A DNA stretch of 63,716 nucleotides, filler included, from Olpidium bornovanus S191 (taxonomy: Eukaryota; Fungi; Olpidiomycota): assembly GCA_017911155.1 (NCBI GenBank). It is 30 parts of 30 records of this genome, joined end to end, with 100 filler letters (N's around TTAATTAATTAA, not from the genome) between each part and the next. Parts side by side here need not be neighbours in the genome. Positions count along the whole stretch, not along the records: positions 14,985 to 17,217 come from JAEFCI010001159.1; 29 more parts are not named here. One strand, given 5' to 3'. A program made the translations under genes and the position numbers. The first letter of the stretch is position 1. Every line of letters starts with the position of its first letter. Below the pieces are notes generated by a model, which made no database searches, was not told the origin of the DNA, and was given only the letters and a program-made list of their open reading frames with translations. This document shows positions 647 to 17,217 of the stretch, piece after piece.

Positions 647-1179
647 GTGGCAAGGCGCCGCCGGCCGCGGTTCTCTGGAAACGAGTCCGCTTGCGCCCGC
701 GGGCCCGTTGGCGCCGCGCGCGGAGGCGGGCTGCGCCGGCGGGACCGCGTTTCCTGTCGGCAGCCGCCCGGCGCCCGGGCCGAATCCGGGACCAGCCGTG
801 CCGCTCGCGGCCGCCGTTTGCGACAGCGAAGGTGAGCTCGGGCTTTTACGCCCGCCGCGGAAGCCGCCGGAGTCTGCGGCGGCGGACGAATCCCACGGTA
901 CGGACCTTTGAGCACCAGCGAAACGCGAAAACCCGAAAACCGAAACGGCGGCTGCTGCGGAAGTCGTCAGGCCGGCCAATGCCTCGTTCGAACGTTGAAC
1001 CGGGTCCCGGCCCCTGCGAACGGCAACCCCCGCACTGGACCCCCGCAGAGACAGCCGGCCAATCGTAACACGACGGCGTTACGATCGGGTATGTCAGCTT
1101 TAGCGTCCGAATCGTTTGTTGTTTTCCCCCCTCCCCCCACACCCGGTTGCGTGTTTTCGTAGTTGTAGCGCCTGCATGA

Positions 1180-1279
1180 NNNNNNNNNNNNNNNNNNNNN
1201 NNNNNNNNNNNNNNNNNNNNNNNTTAATTAATTAANNNNNNNNNNNNNNNNNNNNNNNNNNNNNNNNNNNNNNNNNNNN
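1180..1279. other. Artificial contig linker (N-run + TTAATTAATTAA + N-run); first of 29
   Basis: Identical 12-mer with stops in all six frames, flanked by N runs, at about 1224, 3714, 5386, 7155, 8398, 9533, 14929, 17262, 18645, 21329, 23876, 25523, 26644, 27831, 29067, 30501, 31707, 36157, 38219, 39940, 41109, 44371, 45502, 46869, 49433, 52182, 54126, 58259 and 62590. Confidence 0.98.
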
Positions 1280-1806
1280 AGCTACTGTTCAAGGTCAAAT
1301 GGAAGGATCAAGTCGCTAACCGGATATGTGAACACGGTCGGATTATTTTGTTGAAAGCATAACTTGACCGACCCCCGCGGAACTTGAATATGAGGAAGTT
1401 GAGCAAAATCTCGGAAGAAGCATTGAGCGCAACGGCCCAATCGGCCCAAGGTCGCCTGGCCCTTGACTGAACCGTTGACTCTTTCGCGAGGCGATGAGCA
1501 GGCCGGAGGTAACGCGTTGGCAGAAGCGGTGGAGACTGAGAAATGGGAGACGTCGGGCGGTTCGTTCAGTTCTGCAGCACCCCGGCCCCGCCCGTCGCGT
1601 CACGCGCGCCACTTTCTTTGTTTTCTTCCTTCCTTCCTATTCTTTCATCAACGTGCGCGCGCCCCCACCTTCCCCCCCTCTCCCCTCTACAACCCCCCCC
1701 CGGCGGTAAACAAACGCCCGCACTGCACCGAAAAAAAAAACGCGCGCCCGATTGTCTCGCTTTCCCAACCGCGGCACCGTCCAGCATCGGCGAAACCCGC
1801 GGGAAC

Positions 1807-1848
<42 letters not shown>

Positions 1849-2458
1849 GCCTCCCCCCCCCCCCCCCCCCCGCTGACTCCACCGGGTCCCGCGGGGCCAG
1901 GATTGCGAAAAACAGACCAGCGGCAAAGAGAGGGGAGGTGGCGGGGCCGGCGGGGTTAAGGCCGACGTGTTCACGGAGGAAAAGGGGGGGGGGGTGGGCC
2001 AACCCCGGTTTTAACCACGATAAAGCTGCAAAAGAAAAAGAGAGGCGCTCTCGCGCATTCATGCCCGTTGTTTTTTTTTTGCTTGTTCGCGGGAGGCGGA
2101 TGAAGAAATGGGAGTAATACTTTGAAAAAAAATGATATTATCGGAATTATATAATGCTTACCTGTGGGGAGTCACGAAAAAAAAACTGCAGGTCACGTGA
2201 AAACCAGGGGATTACGAAGAATGGTGTGAAAGTCGATGGATGTTCCGGGGGGAGGAGGAGGAGGGAAACAACTAAAAGCCTGACTGGCCCACGGGGTCGA
2301 CCAAAGTTGGGGGGGGGGGGGGAATGCGAAAAGGCGGGGGAGCTAGAAATGCTTTTTCCGGGTGGACAACGAATAAAAAAAAGGCCCACAGGTGAACAGC
2401 ACAACTCAGCAGTTAGCATTCAGAACGCAGCAGGGGCACGACGTGATCAAGTCGCCTT

Positions 2459-3669
2459 TCAAGTCGCCTTTGTGCTGCAGCAGCAGACGCTCCACGAAGG
2501 CTCGGTGGCGGAATCCCTGGAAGGGGGAGGGGTGAGCTTTCGACGGCGAAAACGAGATCCCGAGCGTTCGTTTTGGCCTCCGCGTCGCGAAAACGGTGTT
2601 CGCGTCTGTTTGAGGCGCGGACGCTTTCTTACCTTTTCTTTGAAAATCAACAGTTGTTCCTCCATCTTACCGAGGACGGCACGATGATCGTGGACATCAG
2701 GGCCGCCGTCTATAAACCCGCGGTGGGAAAGAGTATCTGTCACGCAAGCCAGCCAAACAAAAAAAAAAAAAAAAAATAAAGCTAAAAAAAGAAGAAAAAA
2801 AAGCTTACGTGATCGGGATGACGAACGCCAAAAAGGGTGGACTCGCGGTCGGCGCGATTCTTCTGACCGACGTCGTCCTCTCGAATTTGCTCGACATCCA
2901 CGTCATGGTTTCGCTTGTCGGCTCCGGCGGCGGCAGAATTCGCGCAGGTGGTCGGCGCGGCAGAAGCGACCGCGCTCCAGGAGGACGCCGGGCAAAGGGC
3001 ACGATCCTCCGCCGTGGAGGCGCCCGCCGCCTCCAAGAAGGACGACGACGAGACCGCGGTCGGCAGCGAACAGCGTGCCCTTTCGTCGACCTCGCAGGTG
3101 GGCTCGGCTTGGAGGATTTCGGCAACCGCGCGCTCCGGCAAGTCATCGGTGGGGGACACCATGACAAATCCGTCTTCGATCTCGGACGGACGGGAAGAGC
3201 AACGCGCTTCTGCTCCGGACAATCCGCCTGCCCCGTTTTCGACAGCCGCACGAACGCCACATCCGTCGACAATCTTTGAACCGCAATCATGTGAAAAGTT
3301 CGAGTGCGCGGAAGGTGTTGCCGGCTCCGCGGTTTTTAGCGTCGCGACACGAGTGTCGTCACCTCCGACAACGCATACTTTCAGCGGCATCGGCGTCCCA
3401 GGAGCCGCAGTGTTTGATTGGTCCGTAGCCACAATTCGGTCACACTTTTGCACGGCGATCGTCTCTGTTCCCTTGTGATGATGGATGGAAGCGGAGGAGA
3501 GCTCCGCACACCGTTCGACGCAGGCAGGACCGGCGTCGTCAGCGGAAACATCCGTCGACACGGTCGGCGCCTGTTGAACATCCTGGTAAATTTCCGGAGC
3601 GCCGGTCGGCGAATAAAGGATTTTGACGCCCTTGATCGCAACGGGGCGCCGGATCTTCAAGAAAACATG
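2459..3669 (-). CDS. Hypothetical low-complexity protein, partial, at least 2 exons
   Basis: A long open frame runs from the contig end to a GTAAGC donor near 2806; the next exon DTLSHRGF..EEQLLIFKEK ends at GTAAGA. No family recognised. Confidence 0.4.
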
Positions 3670-3769
3670 NNNNNNNNNNNNNNNNNNNNNNNNNNNNNNN
3701 NNNNNNNNNNNNNTTAATTAATTAANNNNNNNNNNNNNNNNNNNNNNNNNNNNNNNNNNNNNNNNNNNN

Positions 3770-4052
3770 CATGCGATTCCGCCACAAGTCCGTCACCGCT
3801 CCCCGCCCGCTCGACCCGCTCCGCCACGATTACGAACGCAAGAGACGACAGCTGAGCAAGCGGCAGGCGGAGTCGGGGGCTGCGGACGCCGGGGCCCCCG
3901 CCGCGGCGGCGAAGGGTAGGCGCGGCAGAGACCCGGCGCCCCGCAGCGAGCTCAAATCTGCGCCGCAGATCGCCAAGGAACGCCTCGCTAAGGAGAGGCG
4001 GCGGCAAAAGACTGGGCGACCGTCTCGCAAGGGGTCGAAGAAGCGGCGTTAG
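3770..4052 (+). CDS. DBP10: DEAD-box RNA helicase DBP10/DDX54, C-terminal end
   Basis: RFRHKSVTAPRPLDPLRHDYERK...RSELKSAPQIAKERLAKERRRQKTGRPSRK matches the characteristic Dbp10 C-terminal tail. Confidence 0.85.
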
Positions 4053-4616
4053 AGGTAAGCTTAATGATTTATATATATATAAAGTAAACATTAATCTAAT
4101 ATTTGATGATTGTATAACATATTAATATTAGTAATTACATTTGATTTGGTGCATATAAAATAGATCTGAAGCGTCTTTGATTCAAGAGAGGGCCGCCAAG
4201 CGGAAAACGCTTGTTTTAAGGAAAGGATCTGCACAATGTATACTTTGTTGAAAAAAAAATAAAGTGAAACGGAAATGTTTTGCGAGCGCGACGTCACTGT
4301 CTGCGGCATCGCCCGCTCGCCTGCCCATCTTTCCTGACTAGAGCAGCAACAGCAGGCGCATTCCAATCCCGGCGCGGCGCACTTTTCTTTTATACGGCAC
4401 TTTGGTTCGGGCAGGGGCGGGCCGGAAATTTCGACCGGGGAAAGCAGCCTTGATTTTTTATATATTTTTTTCTCACACACGCACCCGGCCTGGCGTGTTG
4501 GGTTGGGGAGGGCGGTGGTGGGGAGGCTAGCCGCATTGGCTGCGGGACGAGCAGTCCCCCCCTGGTTGCGGGGGTTGCTGGGTCGTTTCTGCGCGGTGCG
4601 GTCTTTTTCTTTTTTT

Positions 4617-14450: not shown

Positions 14451-15018
14451 GAACACGACACGGCCGGCCAATTTGATAGAGATAGCGGAAACGGCCGGCG
14501 GAAAAGAAAGGCGTCTTTTCCGCGCCGATTTTTTCGAAAGGGCAAAGTGAGCTTCCATGAGTATACGTCTTTCCGAGTCGAGAGTTGGTCAAACGCGGGA
14601 AAGTCGCGTGGGGCGGGTGCAGAAGGCTGCCCGCCAGCTGGTGCAGCTTTCTACGTGCCGCGTGGGGGCCGGTGAGGCGCGCGCGCGCTAACAAAAAGCC
14701 CGCCCGACAAACACCCCGCACACGCGCACGCGCGGGCCGCGCTTTAGTCACACGCATGCTCGGTGATCGGTTTGTCTGACGCTCATTTTACGTGGGCATT
14801 ATGCCAAAGATGTCGGGCGGTTTTTTTTTTTTGTTTTTTTTTTTTTTTTTTTTTTTTTGTTACGCGCGACGTGCCGCGCAGGCCNNNNNNNNNNNNNNNN
14901 NNNNNNNNNNNNNNNNNNNNNNNNNNNNTTAATTAATTAANNNNNNNNNNNNNNNNNNNNNNNNNNNNNNNNNNNNNNNNNNNNCATGCCAAGTTTTATA
15001 GTGAAATTTTTTCCGCAG

Positions 15019-17217
15019 CCGTGCGGCGATTTCGAGAGGAGCACCCGATATTGAGAGCGAAACTTTTCAGGAACGAGAGAATTGTTGACGCGGACATCGA
15101 GGGGTTCGTCGACCGCCAGCCTCGCCCAGATTCTCGCCGGGATTGGAGAAGGCGAAGCAGCGATGGAAATTTGGATGAAGGGCTCGCGGATGACGACTTG
15201 CCACTGTTTTACTCCGAAATATTGCTCGGGGGTGAAGGCGTAGCCGAGCAGTTATGGGACCACGTTCAACGTTACATATCGGAGGCGGACCCGGTGTCAG
15301 CGCCATTCAAAGTATTTTTGGCGTGCCGCGAAGGCGGCAGCGCGTGCGACTGGGCCGACGCCTCGTCGGACGCGAATGGCGACGTCTGCATACACGTTGC
15401 ATTTGTGGCATCGACGGGGTTCGCAGACGACGTGACCTTGACGTGGGCGGCGCGGCAAGTCCTCGCTCTCTACAGCAGAGCGGTGCGGGCCCACGAGCGA
15501 GCTGTGCCAGAAGTTGTTCGGGGCAAATACGCCCACGACGGGCTAGGCGATCTTGGCCGCCAGCAGCTGGAGCAGTATGAGACCCCGGAGGGGACGTACG
15601 GCTTCCTCGACTTTGCCTTCGACGAGTCCCACGATGTCTCGCAGCGTCCCGTGCGGCAGCAGCTCGCTTACTGGCGGACACAATTGTCCGAGACGAGCCA
15701 GGAGATTGTCGACGCCCGCAAGCGCGCGGAACTCGAATCCCAGATTCGCCGCCTCACCGCCCAGCGCAACGGATGCCTCCTCCAGCGCGACTCGGTGCTG
15801 AAGCGGCGGCCCGATCTCGACGCGCAGCTCGAAGACTTACGGACGCAGCGGCGGCGCATCGACGAGCAGGCCAGCGATGTCAGCTCCGTCGCCTACGCTG
15901 ACAGCGTGACCGGCGAGAACATAGTCATCTCTATGCAGGCAAAGCAGGCGCTCATCAAGGCCGTTCTCGGCGAAGAGGCGGCGGAGGAGAATATCGACAA
16001 GTTCCTGGAGAAGCACCAGGTACCCAAGGAAACCCGGGAAAAAATCTGCGCCGAGAAAATGAGCGTCGAGTCGTTCATCGCGCTCGACGATCGGGTTCTC
16101 ACGGAGCGCGGAATCATTATGACAAAGGACCGACGCCAGATCATGGCGTTGTCCGACTTCGTGCGAAACCGCGTGCGGGAGTGCCTCCAGGAGCAGACTC
16201 GCGTGAAGTACACCCTGGAGCGGAAGATCTTGAAGCTGCAGCGAGAAGTCGAACAGGCTGTCGACGACCTCAAGCGTAATCAAGACCAGCTGGACGATGT
16301 GGAGGACAAGGTCATAAAGGTTTACAACGAGCTGAACCCACCGGTCGTCGAGATGATCATTCCACAGCTCTCGCTGCTGGGGATCGGCGCTTACAACTCC
16401 CTTGAAAAGAAGGCAGCCGAAGTGGGATCGAGTAAACGTCAGCTGCATGGGTTCATTCCTGTTCGTATGGAGAAGGAATCCGTGGACAAACTGCGGTATT
16501 ACTACCGCGACTTCAAAGCGGAGAGGCATCGGCTGAGGCACGCACAGAGAAAAAAAGACGCCGCACTTTACCAGGAGCCAGCAGTAGCGGACGGAGGCGG
16601 CATCTCTGCCTCTTCAGCGGTCGGAGATGACGACGCAGAGGAGGTCTCGAGTGGCGACGAGAGCAGCGACCCTTCAGACTACGAGTTTGTGGCCAACATG
16701 CCGAACAAGTCCATGGAAGCCATATGTCTGGCCGCATTTTCGATTCTGCTCAAACATATCACTGGAACGGAAAAGTTTATTATCGGGGACTCTATGTCAT
16801 TCCGCCGACGGTATGACGCCGCCGGAGCATGTGCCGGGCCGCTGACAAATACGCTGCCAATCAAGGTAGATTTGTCCAGCGCGACGATGACGTTTCAGTC
16901 CCTGCTGGCGAACATGGTCAAAACGCTTAGAGACGGCAAAAAGAACGGCTACAGTTGTCCGCTGCCGCTAATCGCCCGGCGCCTCGATCGGCCGGAACTG
17001 ACACTGCCGGTGCGGTTCCAGTACATCGTGGAAAAGGAGCAGGAACACTGGTGCTCCCTCGGCCTCTCCATCGGCGACTTAGTCGCAATCCCGGCCGACG
17101 CGCAGGACCGGGAAGCGGAGACCGCGTCGCGGGACCCGACCATCCCGCCGATGCAACGCGTGTGGGCGCAGAACAAGCAGGAGGACTTCGAGCTGAAGCT
17201 GGTGCTGGTCGAGCATG
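15019..17217 (+). CDS. NRPS-type condensation-domain protein with degenerate active site and coiled-coil/SAM-like insert, partial
   Basis: One exon of about 730 codons. C-domain motifs: EEHPILRAKL, QLAYWRTQL, ICLAAFSILLKHITGTEKFIIG, GPLTNTLPIKVDLSSATMTFQSLL, DFELKLVL. Confidence 0.75.

Follow-up and report, generated by a model that had tools for sequence, protein, structure and literature searches.

A piece of the genome of the fungus Olpidium bornovanus S191 (record JAEFCI010001159.1) raises the question of why the two lobes of a protein with the fold of a non-ribosomal peptide synthetase (NRPS) condensation (C) domain should be held apart by more than two hundred residues, at a point where the flanking motifs are normally adjacent, and of what the intervening sequence might do. 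The piece occupies positions 14985–17217 of the window, that is, of the whole stretch of 63,716 nucleotides that was analysed, and all positions given below count along that stretch. It contained a single open frame on the + strand, 744 codons in length (14985..17216) and free of stop codons over 2232 nt, which was truncated at both ends by the edges of the piece. The remaining five frames held short open reading frames only, and the G+C content of the piece was 53–67%. The answer proposed here is that the frame encodes the conserved central part of a protein that occurs mostly once per genome. Its family was encountered in these searches only in zoosporic fungi, and is one in which a condensation fold with a degenerate active site carries a predicted coiled-coil stalk tipped with a SAM-fold domain.

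The insert between the lobes

Motif spacing is a well-known constant of the condensation fold. In a sample of 129 NRPS proteins from our own searches, which was redundant and contained many copies of PvdD, the YWxxxL and PxDxxR motifs were separated by a median of 15 residues (maximum 36, 237 cases), and the HHxxxDG and GxFxNT motifs by a median of 154 residues (maximum 166, 272 cases). The Olpidium frame did not keep to this spacing. Exactly 216 residues (15690–16337) lay between LAYWRTQLSE and PPVVEMIIPQLSL, and the equivalents of the second pair of motifs, S143 and G618, were 475 residues apart, compared with approximately 154 between the canonical C3 and C5 motifs. The additional length came from three sources: the 216 residues, here called insert 1; a variable insert 2; and longer loops in the N-lobe. 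A preliminary description of this DNA had counted about 215 residues between motifs that are normally adjacent, and had distinguished two heptad-rich helices and a SAM-like segment at about 15985–16170 among them. The count and its coordinates were reproduced, the canonical motifs were indeed close neighbours, and the helices and, at the level of the fold, the SAM-like segment were recovered by the analyses that follow.

Insert 1 was a regular feature of the family. It was present in all 61 members that had both lobes, where its length was 202–259 residues (median 216), and its occupancy was 0.81–0.88 in an alignment of 83 sequences. The same alignment placed the highest conservation of the entire protein at residues 381–420 (mean of 0.62–0.67, against 0.3–0.45 elsewhere). 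When insert 1 was queried alone, identity across the chytrid orders was 55–71%, and the matches of a word search confined to the insert were all members of the same family. The coding sequence of the tip was uninterrupted in the window and in eight of nine other genomes examined. Searches of the insert against Pfam and NCBIfam produced only sub-threshold coiled-coil noise (Snapin, Sec10_N and an SMC-related model). Insert 2, unlike the length-fixed insert 1, varied from 10 to 96 residues across the family, with an occupancy of 0.30–0.57, and its residues 537–571 had a predicted local distance difference test (pLDDT) score below 50 in the AlphaFold2 model. It was situated between a strand-helix element, 'GFIPV...LRYYYRDF', and the 'CLAAF' helix, and its linker was rich in Ser, Asp and Glu.

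The AlphaFold2 model of the fragment, made with the family alignment, had a mean pLDDT of 83.9 and a predicted template modelling score (pTM) of 0.74. From its beginning, the model comprised the N-lobe, ending in a helix (223–234) and a strand (235–238); a long helix (244–297); a hairpin (301–305/312–316), in which D306 was conserved at 96%; helices at 317–328, 338–343, 348–353, 361–365 and 369–374; a second long helix (380–450); a strand (455–458); and the C-lobe. Both long helices were predicted with pLDDT of 90–98. Two loops of the N-lobe (residues 48–73 and 118–129) had values below 50 over much of their length, and low occupancy in the family alignment. Mean hydrophobicity across the family had a period of 3.5 residues in helix 244–297, matched by 2.4% of shuffles, and in helix 398–450, matched by 0.1%; both displayed a clean a/d pattern, and a control helix of the C-lobe had no 3.5-residue period in the same test. 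One helix of approximately 54 residues leads outward in the model, and another of approximately 53 residues leads back as the direct continuation of SAM helix 5. The two are attached to the body at strands that lie next to each other, and they rejoin at a compact domain; on this model they must pair in antiparallel fashion, and the predicted stalk would hold the SAM head about 8 nm from the body. This is the coiled-coil arm with a SAM tip that the preliminary description had envisaged.

The tip was also modelled separately (residues 290–405; pLDDT 85.4, pTM 0.73). Comparison of this model with the PDB using Foldseek returned SAM domains in almost all of the top rows, among them Vts1, tankyrase, SLy1/SASH3, Eph receptors, ANKS3, Shank2 and BICC1. 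Probabilities were about 0.9, target TM-scores were 0.65–0.79 and the root-mean-square deviation (rmsd) was 2.1–3.0 Å over 56–69 residues; no match in this search attained an E-value of 0.001. VIA-align, which is independent of Foldseek, was applied to 48,161 representative PDB chains, and nearly all of the best 50 were SAM domains. The best match was CNK2/SAMD12 (Z = 9.1, rmsd 1.8 Å over 70 residues), followed by Hyphen (Z = 8.8) and by EphA5/SAMD5, CASKIN2 and liprin (Z = 8.5); other helical folds (Rad51-N, NusA, DisA) occurred only at Z below 6. Overall, the SAM matches had rmsd values of 1.8–2.9 Å over 60–78 residues and covered whole targets, as a five-helix bundle corresponding to residues 335–401 (15987–16187).

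Sequence comparison of the tip was less productive. The Pfam SAM models matched neither the window nor the contig of a relative (L001), even at E ≤ 10; the single tip sequence, when searched against PDB sequences, retrieved only a chance-level match to CodY (E = 0.14); and a search of the ESM Atlas with the tip gave no usable match. A profile (A5) made from a tip-only alignment of ten species was also searched against PDB sequences, and SAM domains made up four of its five matches, all at marginal values (SASH3, E = 0.022 and 0.026; BICC1, E = 0.061; ANKS6, E = 0.33), which lends the structural result slight support from a separate source. The modelled tip makes a convincing SAM-fold domain, because the list of structural matches was uniform and the targets were fully covered, and it is probably a very divergent SAM homologue. 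The start of its helix 5 bears a basic cluster (KDRRK...RNR), of which K381, R383, R384, R394 and R396 were among the most conserved residues. Polymerising SAM domains associate by a mid-loop and an end-helix surface, and of these two it was the basic end-helix region that stood out as conserved in the family.

The condensation body and its active site

The Pfam condensation model (PF00668) matched the 744-residue fragment at residues 572–672 (profile positions 246–343, E = 1e-11), and neither the N-terminal 235 residues nor insert 1 had a significant match to any family in Pfam or NCBIfam. The structure model was that of an intact two-lobed condensation fold. Its body aligned to solved C domains by VIA-align with Z of 16–18.3 over 306–345 residues, from the first residue of the model to the last; matches included AmbE CmodAA, SrfA-C, CmnI and the starter C domain of RzmA, as well as the X-domain of a glycopeptide synthetase (6m7l, Z = 16.5). 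The top matches of the body in Foldseek were all NRPS condensation domains.

The catalytic motif was degenerate. At the position of HHxxxDG, the Olpidium sequence reads S-T-G-F-A-D-D. The Asp of the motif (D148) was invariant among 66 members of the family, and the first position (S143) was Ser in 54 of them. His occupied the position of the second, catalytic His in one member only; in the rest it was replaced by T, S, L, R, K, P and others. In C domains the motif Asp pairs structurally with a conserved Arg. R607, which we take to be that partner, was conserved in the C-lobe together with G618, P619 and P625, the last three within GPLTNTLPIKVD, the stretch of the C5 region that is also matched by large NRPSs. 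The retention of Asp and Arg, with both His lost, is the pattern of a fold that has been maintained after its chemistry was given up. The preliminary description had spoken of a dead C-domain, and both terms are supported: the fold by the structural matches, and its probable inactivity by a catalytic His missing from 65 of 66 members.

The assembly line to which a C domain would belong was sought in the relatives, the window frame being truncated at both ends, and seven full-length proteins contained no PP-binding (carrier) or AMP-binding (adenylation) domain, nor any other consistent domain; their N-terminal 200–700 residues were variable. A motif specific to the family, RNxxIxDAD, was strongly conserved in the N-lobe (N30, D35 and D37 at 98%, I33 at 95%). 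To our knowledge it has no counterpart in canonical C domains, and it could be either a binding site or a structural turn. The features of the frame are collected in Table 1.

Table 1. Features of the open frame at 14985–17216, with positions along the window
Feature	Residues	Position	Strand	Basis or remark
N-terminal lobe, condensation-like fold	1–235	14985..15689	+	Cut by the 5' edge; no Pfam match of its own; collinear with about 80 relatives
Family-specific motif RNxxIxDAD	29–37	15069..15095	+	Directly after a C2-like motif
N-lobe loop, Arg/Asp-rich	48–73	15126–15203	+	Predicted disordered
N-lobe loop	118–129	15336–15371	+	Predicted disordered
Degenerate active-site motif S143-T144-G-F-A-D148-D-V-T, in place of HHxxxDGxS		15411..15437	+	Family alignment
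LAYWRTQLSE	226–235	15660..15689	+	Final canonical motif before insert 1
Insert 1 (216 residues): stalk, tip domain, stalk	236–451	15690..16337	+	
Outgoing stalk helix (predicted)	244–297	15714..15875	+	AlphaFold2, pLDDT 97–98 over most of its length; a/d heptads
Beta-hairpin, then helix 317–328, before the SAM fold (predicted)	301–305 and 312–316; 317–328	15885..15968	+	AlphaFold2 of the whole fragment and of the tip alone
SAM-fold domain (predicted)	335–401	15987..16187	+	VIA-align, Foldseek, tip profile
Returning helix: SAM helix 5 and stalk (predicted)	380–450	16122..16334	+	AlphaFold2, pLDDT 90–98
PPVVEMIIPQLSL	452–464	16338–16376	+	First motif after insert 1 (starts PPVVEM)
C-terminal lobe, condensation-like fold	452–744	16338..17216	+	Cut by the 3' edge; PF00668 E = 7e-10 for the lobe alone
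Insert 2: extension of helix 497–529, then acidic, low-complexity, disordered linker	about 508–572	16506..16700	+	
C5-like motif GPLTNTLPIKVD	618–629	16836..16871	+	Conservation: G618 99%, P619 95%, P625 100%, D629 91%

Distribution of the family and its gene neighbours

A word-index search with the Olpidium protein identified a single relative, P0001 (980 residues; 30% identity over 99% coverage). Insert 1 was aligned throughout and was the best-conserved part of P0001. This protein was encoded on a eukaryotic genomic contig (L001), where its neighbours were genes for HABP4/PAI-RBP1 and PRP38, one on either side. A profile of the two sequences was then used in an exhaustive HMMER search, in which hits were cluster representatives at 50% identity. 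There were 374 matches at E ≤ 1e-3 and 76 at E ≤ 1e-30, and approximately 82 were members of the family; many of these spanned N-lobe, insert and C-lobe in one stretch. Below the family, matches were large NRPSs or short fragments, and involved the C-lobe only, mostly its C5 region. Two further searches returned bacterial sequences: bacterial NRPSs dominated a word-index search with the 83-sequence profile, which was uninformative on the family, and an ESM Atlas search with the B. dendrobatidis orthologue found only clusters of bacterial stand-alone C domains.

The named sources of family members, about 35 genera, were all zoosporic fungi. The Chytridiomycota were represented by Zopfochytrium, Irineochytrium, Phlyctochytrium, Borealophlyctis, Cladochytrium, Spizellomyces, Chytriomyces, Batrachochytrium, Synchytrium, Lobulomyces, Clydaea, Rhizophlyctis, Blyttiomyces, Polyrhizophydium, Homolaphlyctis, Dinochytrium, Gaertneriomyces and Geranomyces, and the Blastocladiomycota by Allomyces, Blastocladiella, Coelomomyces and Sorochytrium; further members came from Gonapodya, Caulochytrium and Rozella. 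Locus tags of the family include BATDEDRAFT_27542, AMAG_12283 and H9P43_001043. Among the named matches there was none from Dikarya, Mucoromycota, animals or any other eukaryote, although the library was rich in such proteomes. A quick maximum-likelihood tree followed the taxonomic orders, in keeping with a gene that is mostly single-copy and was inherited vertically. The Blastocladiomycota were recovered as a group (Shimodaira–Hasegawa-like approximate likelihood ratio test, 99), and the Olpidium sequence fell within the chytrid part of the tree (support 93), without firm placement there. Its nearest relative, from Borealophlyctis, was 36–37% identical, and neither of the two protein collections contained an exact entry for it; the GC-rich lineage from which it comes seems to have no other representative among the matches.

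Database entries for the family were all entitled 'hypothetical protein' or 'Condensation domain-containing protein'. Literature searches found no paper on it, and a broader search gave unrelated chytrid papers only. The nested architecture and the family as a whole thus appear to be undescribed, although the component folds are known. This supports the preliminary description, which had not recognised the architecture from any described family, and the link that it suggested with flagellated fungi fits a range in which every named source organism is zoosporic.

Several observations were made on individual genomes. In Batrachochytrium (L006:4018-4152) and Chytriomyces (L007:3425-3551), two genera from different orders, the next gene downstream lay on the opposite strand and encoded a small GTPase of the Arf/Ras type, some 170 residues long, which may represent conserved synteny. 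This neighbour was absent from L001, where PRP38 is downstream, and from L010, where an RPAP2/Rtr1-like gene is. On L001 an open frame (817-4545) began 786 nt upstream of the called gene and would encode 1242 residues rather than 980, and so the N-terminus of P0001 may be under-called. The HABP4/PAI-RBP1 gene ended 16 nt before the first ATG of this longer frame, indicating a very compact genome. Two annotations were anomalous. One member of the pair P0007/P0011 bears the Joint Genome Institute name 'flagellar motor switch/type III secretory pathway protein FliN', plainly an error of automatic annotation; the other, a protein of 1508 residues from Phlyctochytrium arcticum, has an N-terminal match to Cyclin_N and is probably a fused gene model.

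Possible roles: scaffold, RNA tether or enzyme

The reading that best fits the evidence, to which a probability of roughly 0.55 may be attached, is that of an adaptor or scaffold protein without catalytic function, whose SAM head is kept a fixed distance away from its body. The condensation fold, though dead, would serve as a docking body, in the manner of the glycopeptide synthetase X-domain. The head would contact a conserved partner by way of helix 5, using its near-invariant basic beginning and the next 40 residues; this partner might be another SAM domain (in self-association, a hetero-pair or a polymer), a different protein, or RNA. The fixed length of the stalk would set the spacing between body and head. 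The phyletic range, confined in these searches to zoosporic lineages, is the sole ground for suggesting that the protein takes part in some structure or stage specific to the zoospore.

Each part of this arrangement has a known counterpart from which it departs. The family resembles NRPS condensation domains (PF00668; CAT-like superfamily, including stand-alone bacterial proteins) in its two-lobed fold, in the Pfam match of its C-lobe, in recognisable C2-, C4-, YW- and C5-like motifs and in the structural Asp. It differs in lacking both His of HHxxxDG and the carrier and adenylation domains, in having a 216-residue insert where canonical domains have 2–3 residues, and in being eukaryotic and seen only in zoosporic fungi. 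With the X-domain of glycopeptide-antibiotic NRPSs (PDB 6m7l) it shares a non-catalytic condensation fold, and the use of this fold as a docking platform is proposed here. That X-domain is a dead C-type domain in the terminal module of a bacterial NRPS, which recruits Oxy P450s and lacks any insert of the coiled-coil or SAM kind. The two are alike in principle, by functional analogy and not as members of one family; the present proteins have no NRPS context.

The tip resembles SAM domains (CNK2/SAMD12, Hyphen/Aveugle, Eph, tankyrase, BICC1, ANKS3/6, SASH3) in its five-helix fold and the basic start of helix 5. Unlike them, it is neither terminal nor free-standing, being nested at the turn of a putative coiled-coil hairpin; a beta-hairpin comes before it, and helix 5 runs on for some 50 residues as part of the stalk. 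In the dynein stalk with its microtubule-binding domain, the SMC hinge and the Rad50 hook, a small head that binds a partner is held out from a globular body, with a stalk to fix the distance. The predicted two-helix stalk of the present family, conserved in length and with a small head at its turn, would follow the same design, as an analogy only. The insert gave no more than a weak coiled-coil match to an SMC-related model; head and body are unrelated to those of dynein, SMC and Rad50 in sequence and in fold, and the stalk is much shorter than that of SMC or Rad50.

Certain points weigh against the scaffold interpretation. The zoosporic range is defined by the 35 or so named genera, and approximately 45 of the 82 representatives fall outside the named set; Neocallimastigomycota, aphelids and non-flagellated relatives were likewise outside any specific search. 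Loss of the His residues is no strict proof that all catalysis has been lost in this superfamily, and the conserved polar residues (RNxxIxDAD, S143, H591) could, from their conservation, form another site. The SAM assignment depends on a predicted structure, for which Z of 9 is only modestly above the 7–8 attainable by unrelated small helical models, and which has the Pfam result and the marginal profile E-values described above to contend with. The antiparallel pairing and outward projection of the stalk are deduced from topology, heptads and model confidence.

A more specific proposal is that the family was an innovation at the base of the fungi for a supramolecular structure particular to the zoospore. 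The SAM heads would polymerise or pair, and the result would be a lattice or tether in which the dead bodies are spaced by the fixed 8-nm stalks, for instance around the flagellar apparatus, the rumposome, or ribosome or lipid-body assemblies; terrestrial fungi would have lost the gene when they lost the swimming stage. This is offered as a tentative and, on balance, unlikely elaboration.

It is rather improbable that the head instead uses the basic beginning of helix 5 to bind hairpins in RNA, as SAM domains of the Smaug/Vts1 class do, and so tethers or regulates stored mRNAs, for instance in the zoospore, which is translationally quiet. The SAM domain of Vts1 was the first match in Foldseek and gave the longest alignment (80 columns, 20% identity); Vts1 and Smaug were also found by VIA-align, at Z of 6.7 and 6.2; and the most conserved residues are those of the basic cluster, which presumably lies where Smaug-type SAM domains contact RNA. 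Protein-binding SAM domains (CNK2/SAMD12, Hyphen, Eph, CASKIN, liprin) nevertheless scored higher (Z of 8.5–9.1), and the tip profile matched SAM domains that bind proteins or polymerise (SASH3, BICC1, ANKS6). The basic surface does not discriminate between the two, since an end-helix surface of this kind also serves SAM-SAM contacts.

Similarly doubtful is the view that the body is still an enzyme, an active acyltransferase with non-canonical residues, which the stalk and SAM domain only localise or oligomerise. The HH pair is dispensable in some members of the superfamily, cyclisation domains among them, and the overall fold is intact (Z of about 18), with N30, D35, D37, S143, D148, H591 and R607 strongly conserved across both lobes. 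Against this, the position of the catalytic His is variable, as expected once catalytic selection has gone, the full-length proteins have no partner domain for carrier or adenylation functions, and the insert is conserved above the lobes. Finally, the suggestion that insert 1 is an unrecognised intron, an assembly chimera or a functionless lineage-specific expansion has nothing in its favour beyond the unusual position of the insert and is rejected as far as sequence comparison reaches, with a very small residual likelihood, since the insert is in frame in every informative relative from Rozella to the chytrids and its tip is uninterrupted in nearly all genomes examined; the frame is also stop-free throughout, and the insert is the best-conserved part of the protein and was predicted with pLDDT of 80–98.

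The reading of the locus as a stalked, non-catalytic scaffold would mean that eukaryotes have put an NRPS condensation fold to non-enzymatic use as a module, a further domain being nested at the junction of its lobes, which is of interest for the evolution of pseudoenzymes and for the structural biology of C domains. The strictly constant stalk length, like the very high conservation of helix 5, indicates that some particular partner has been conserved as well. For the fungi themselves, the family provides a conserved, mostly single-copy and uncharacterised gene that marks zoosporic lineages, from Rozella to the chytrids and Blastocladiomycota, and one that can be named as a candidate component of zoospore-specific structures, of which the molecular composition is little known.

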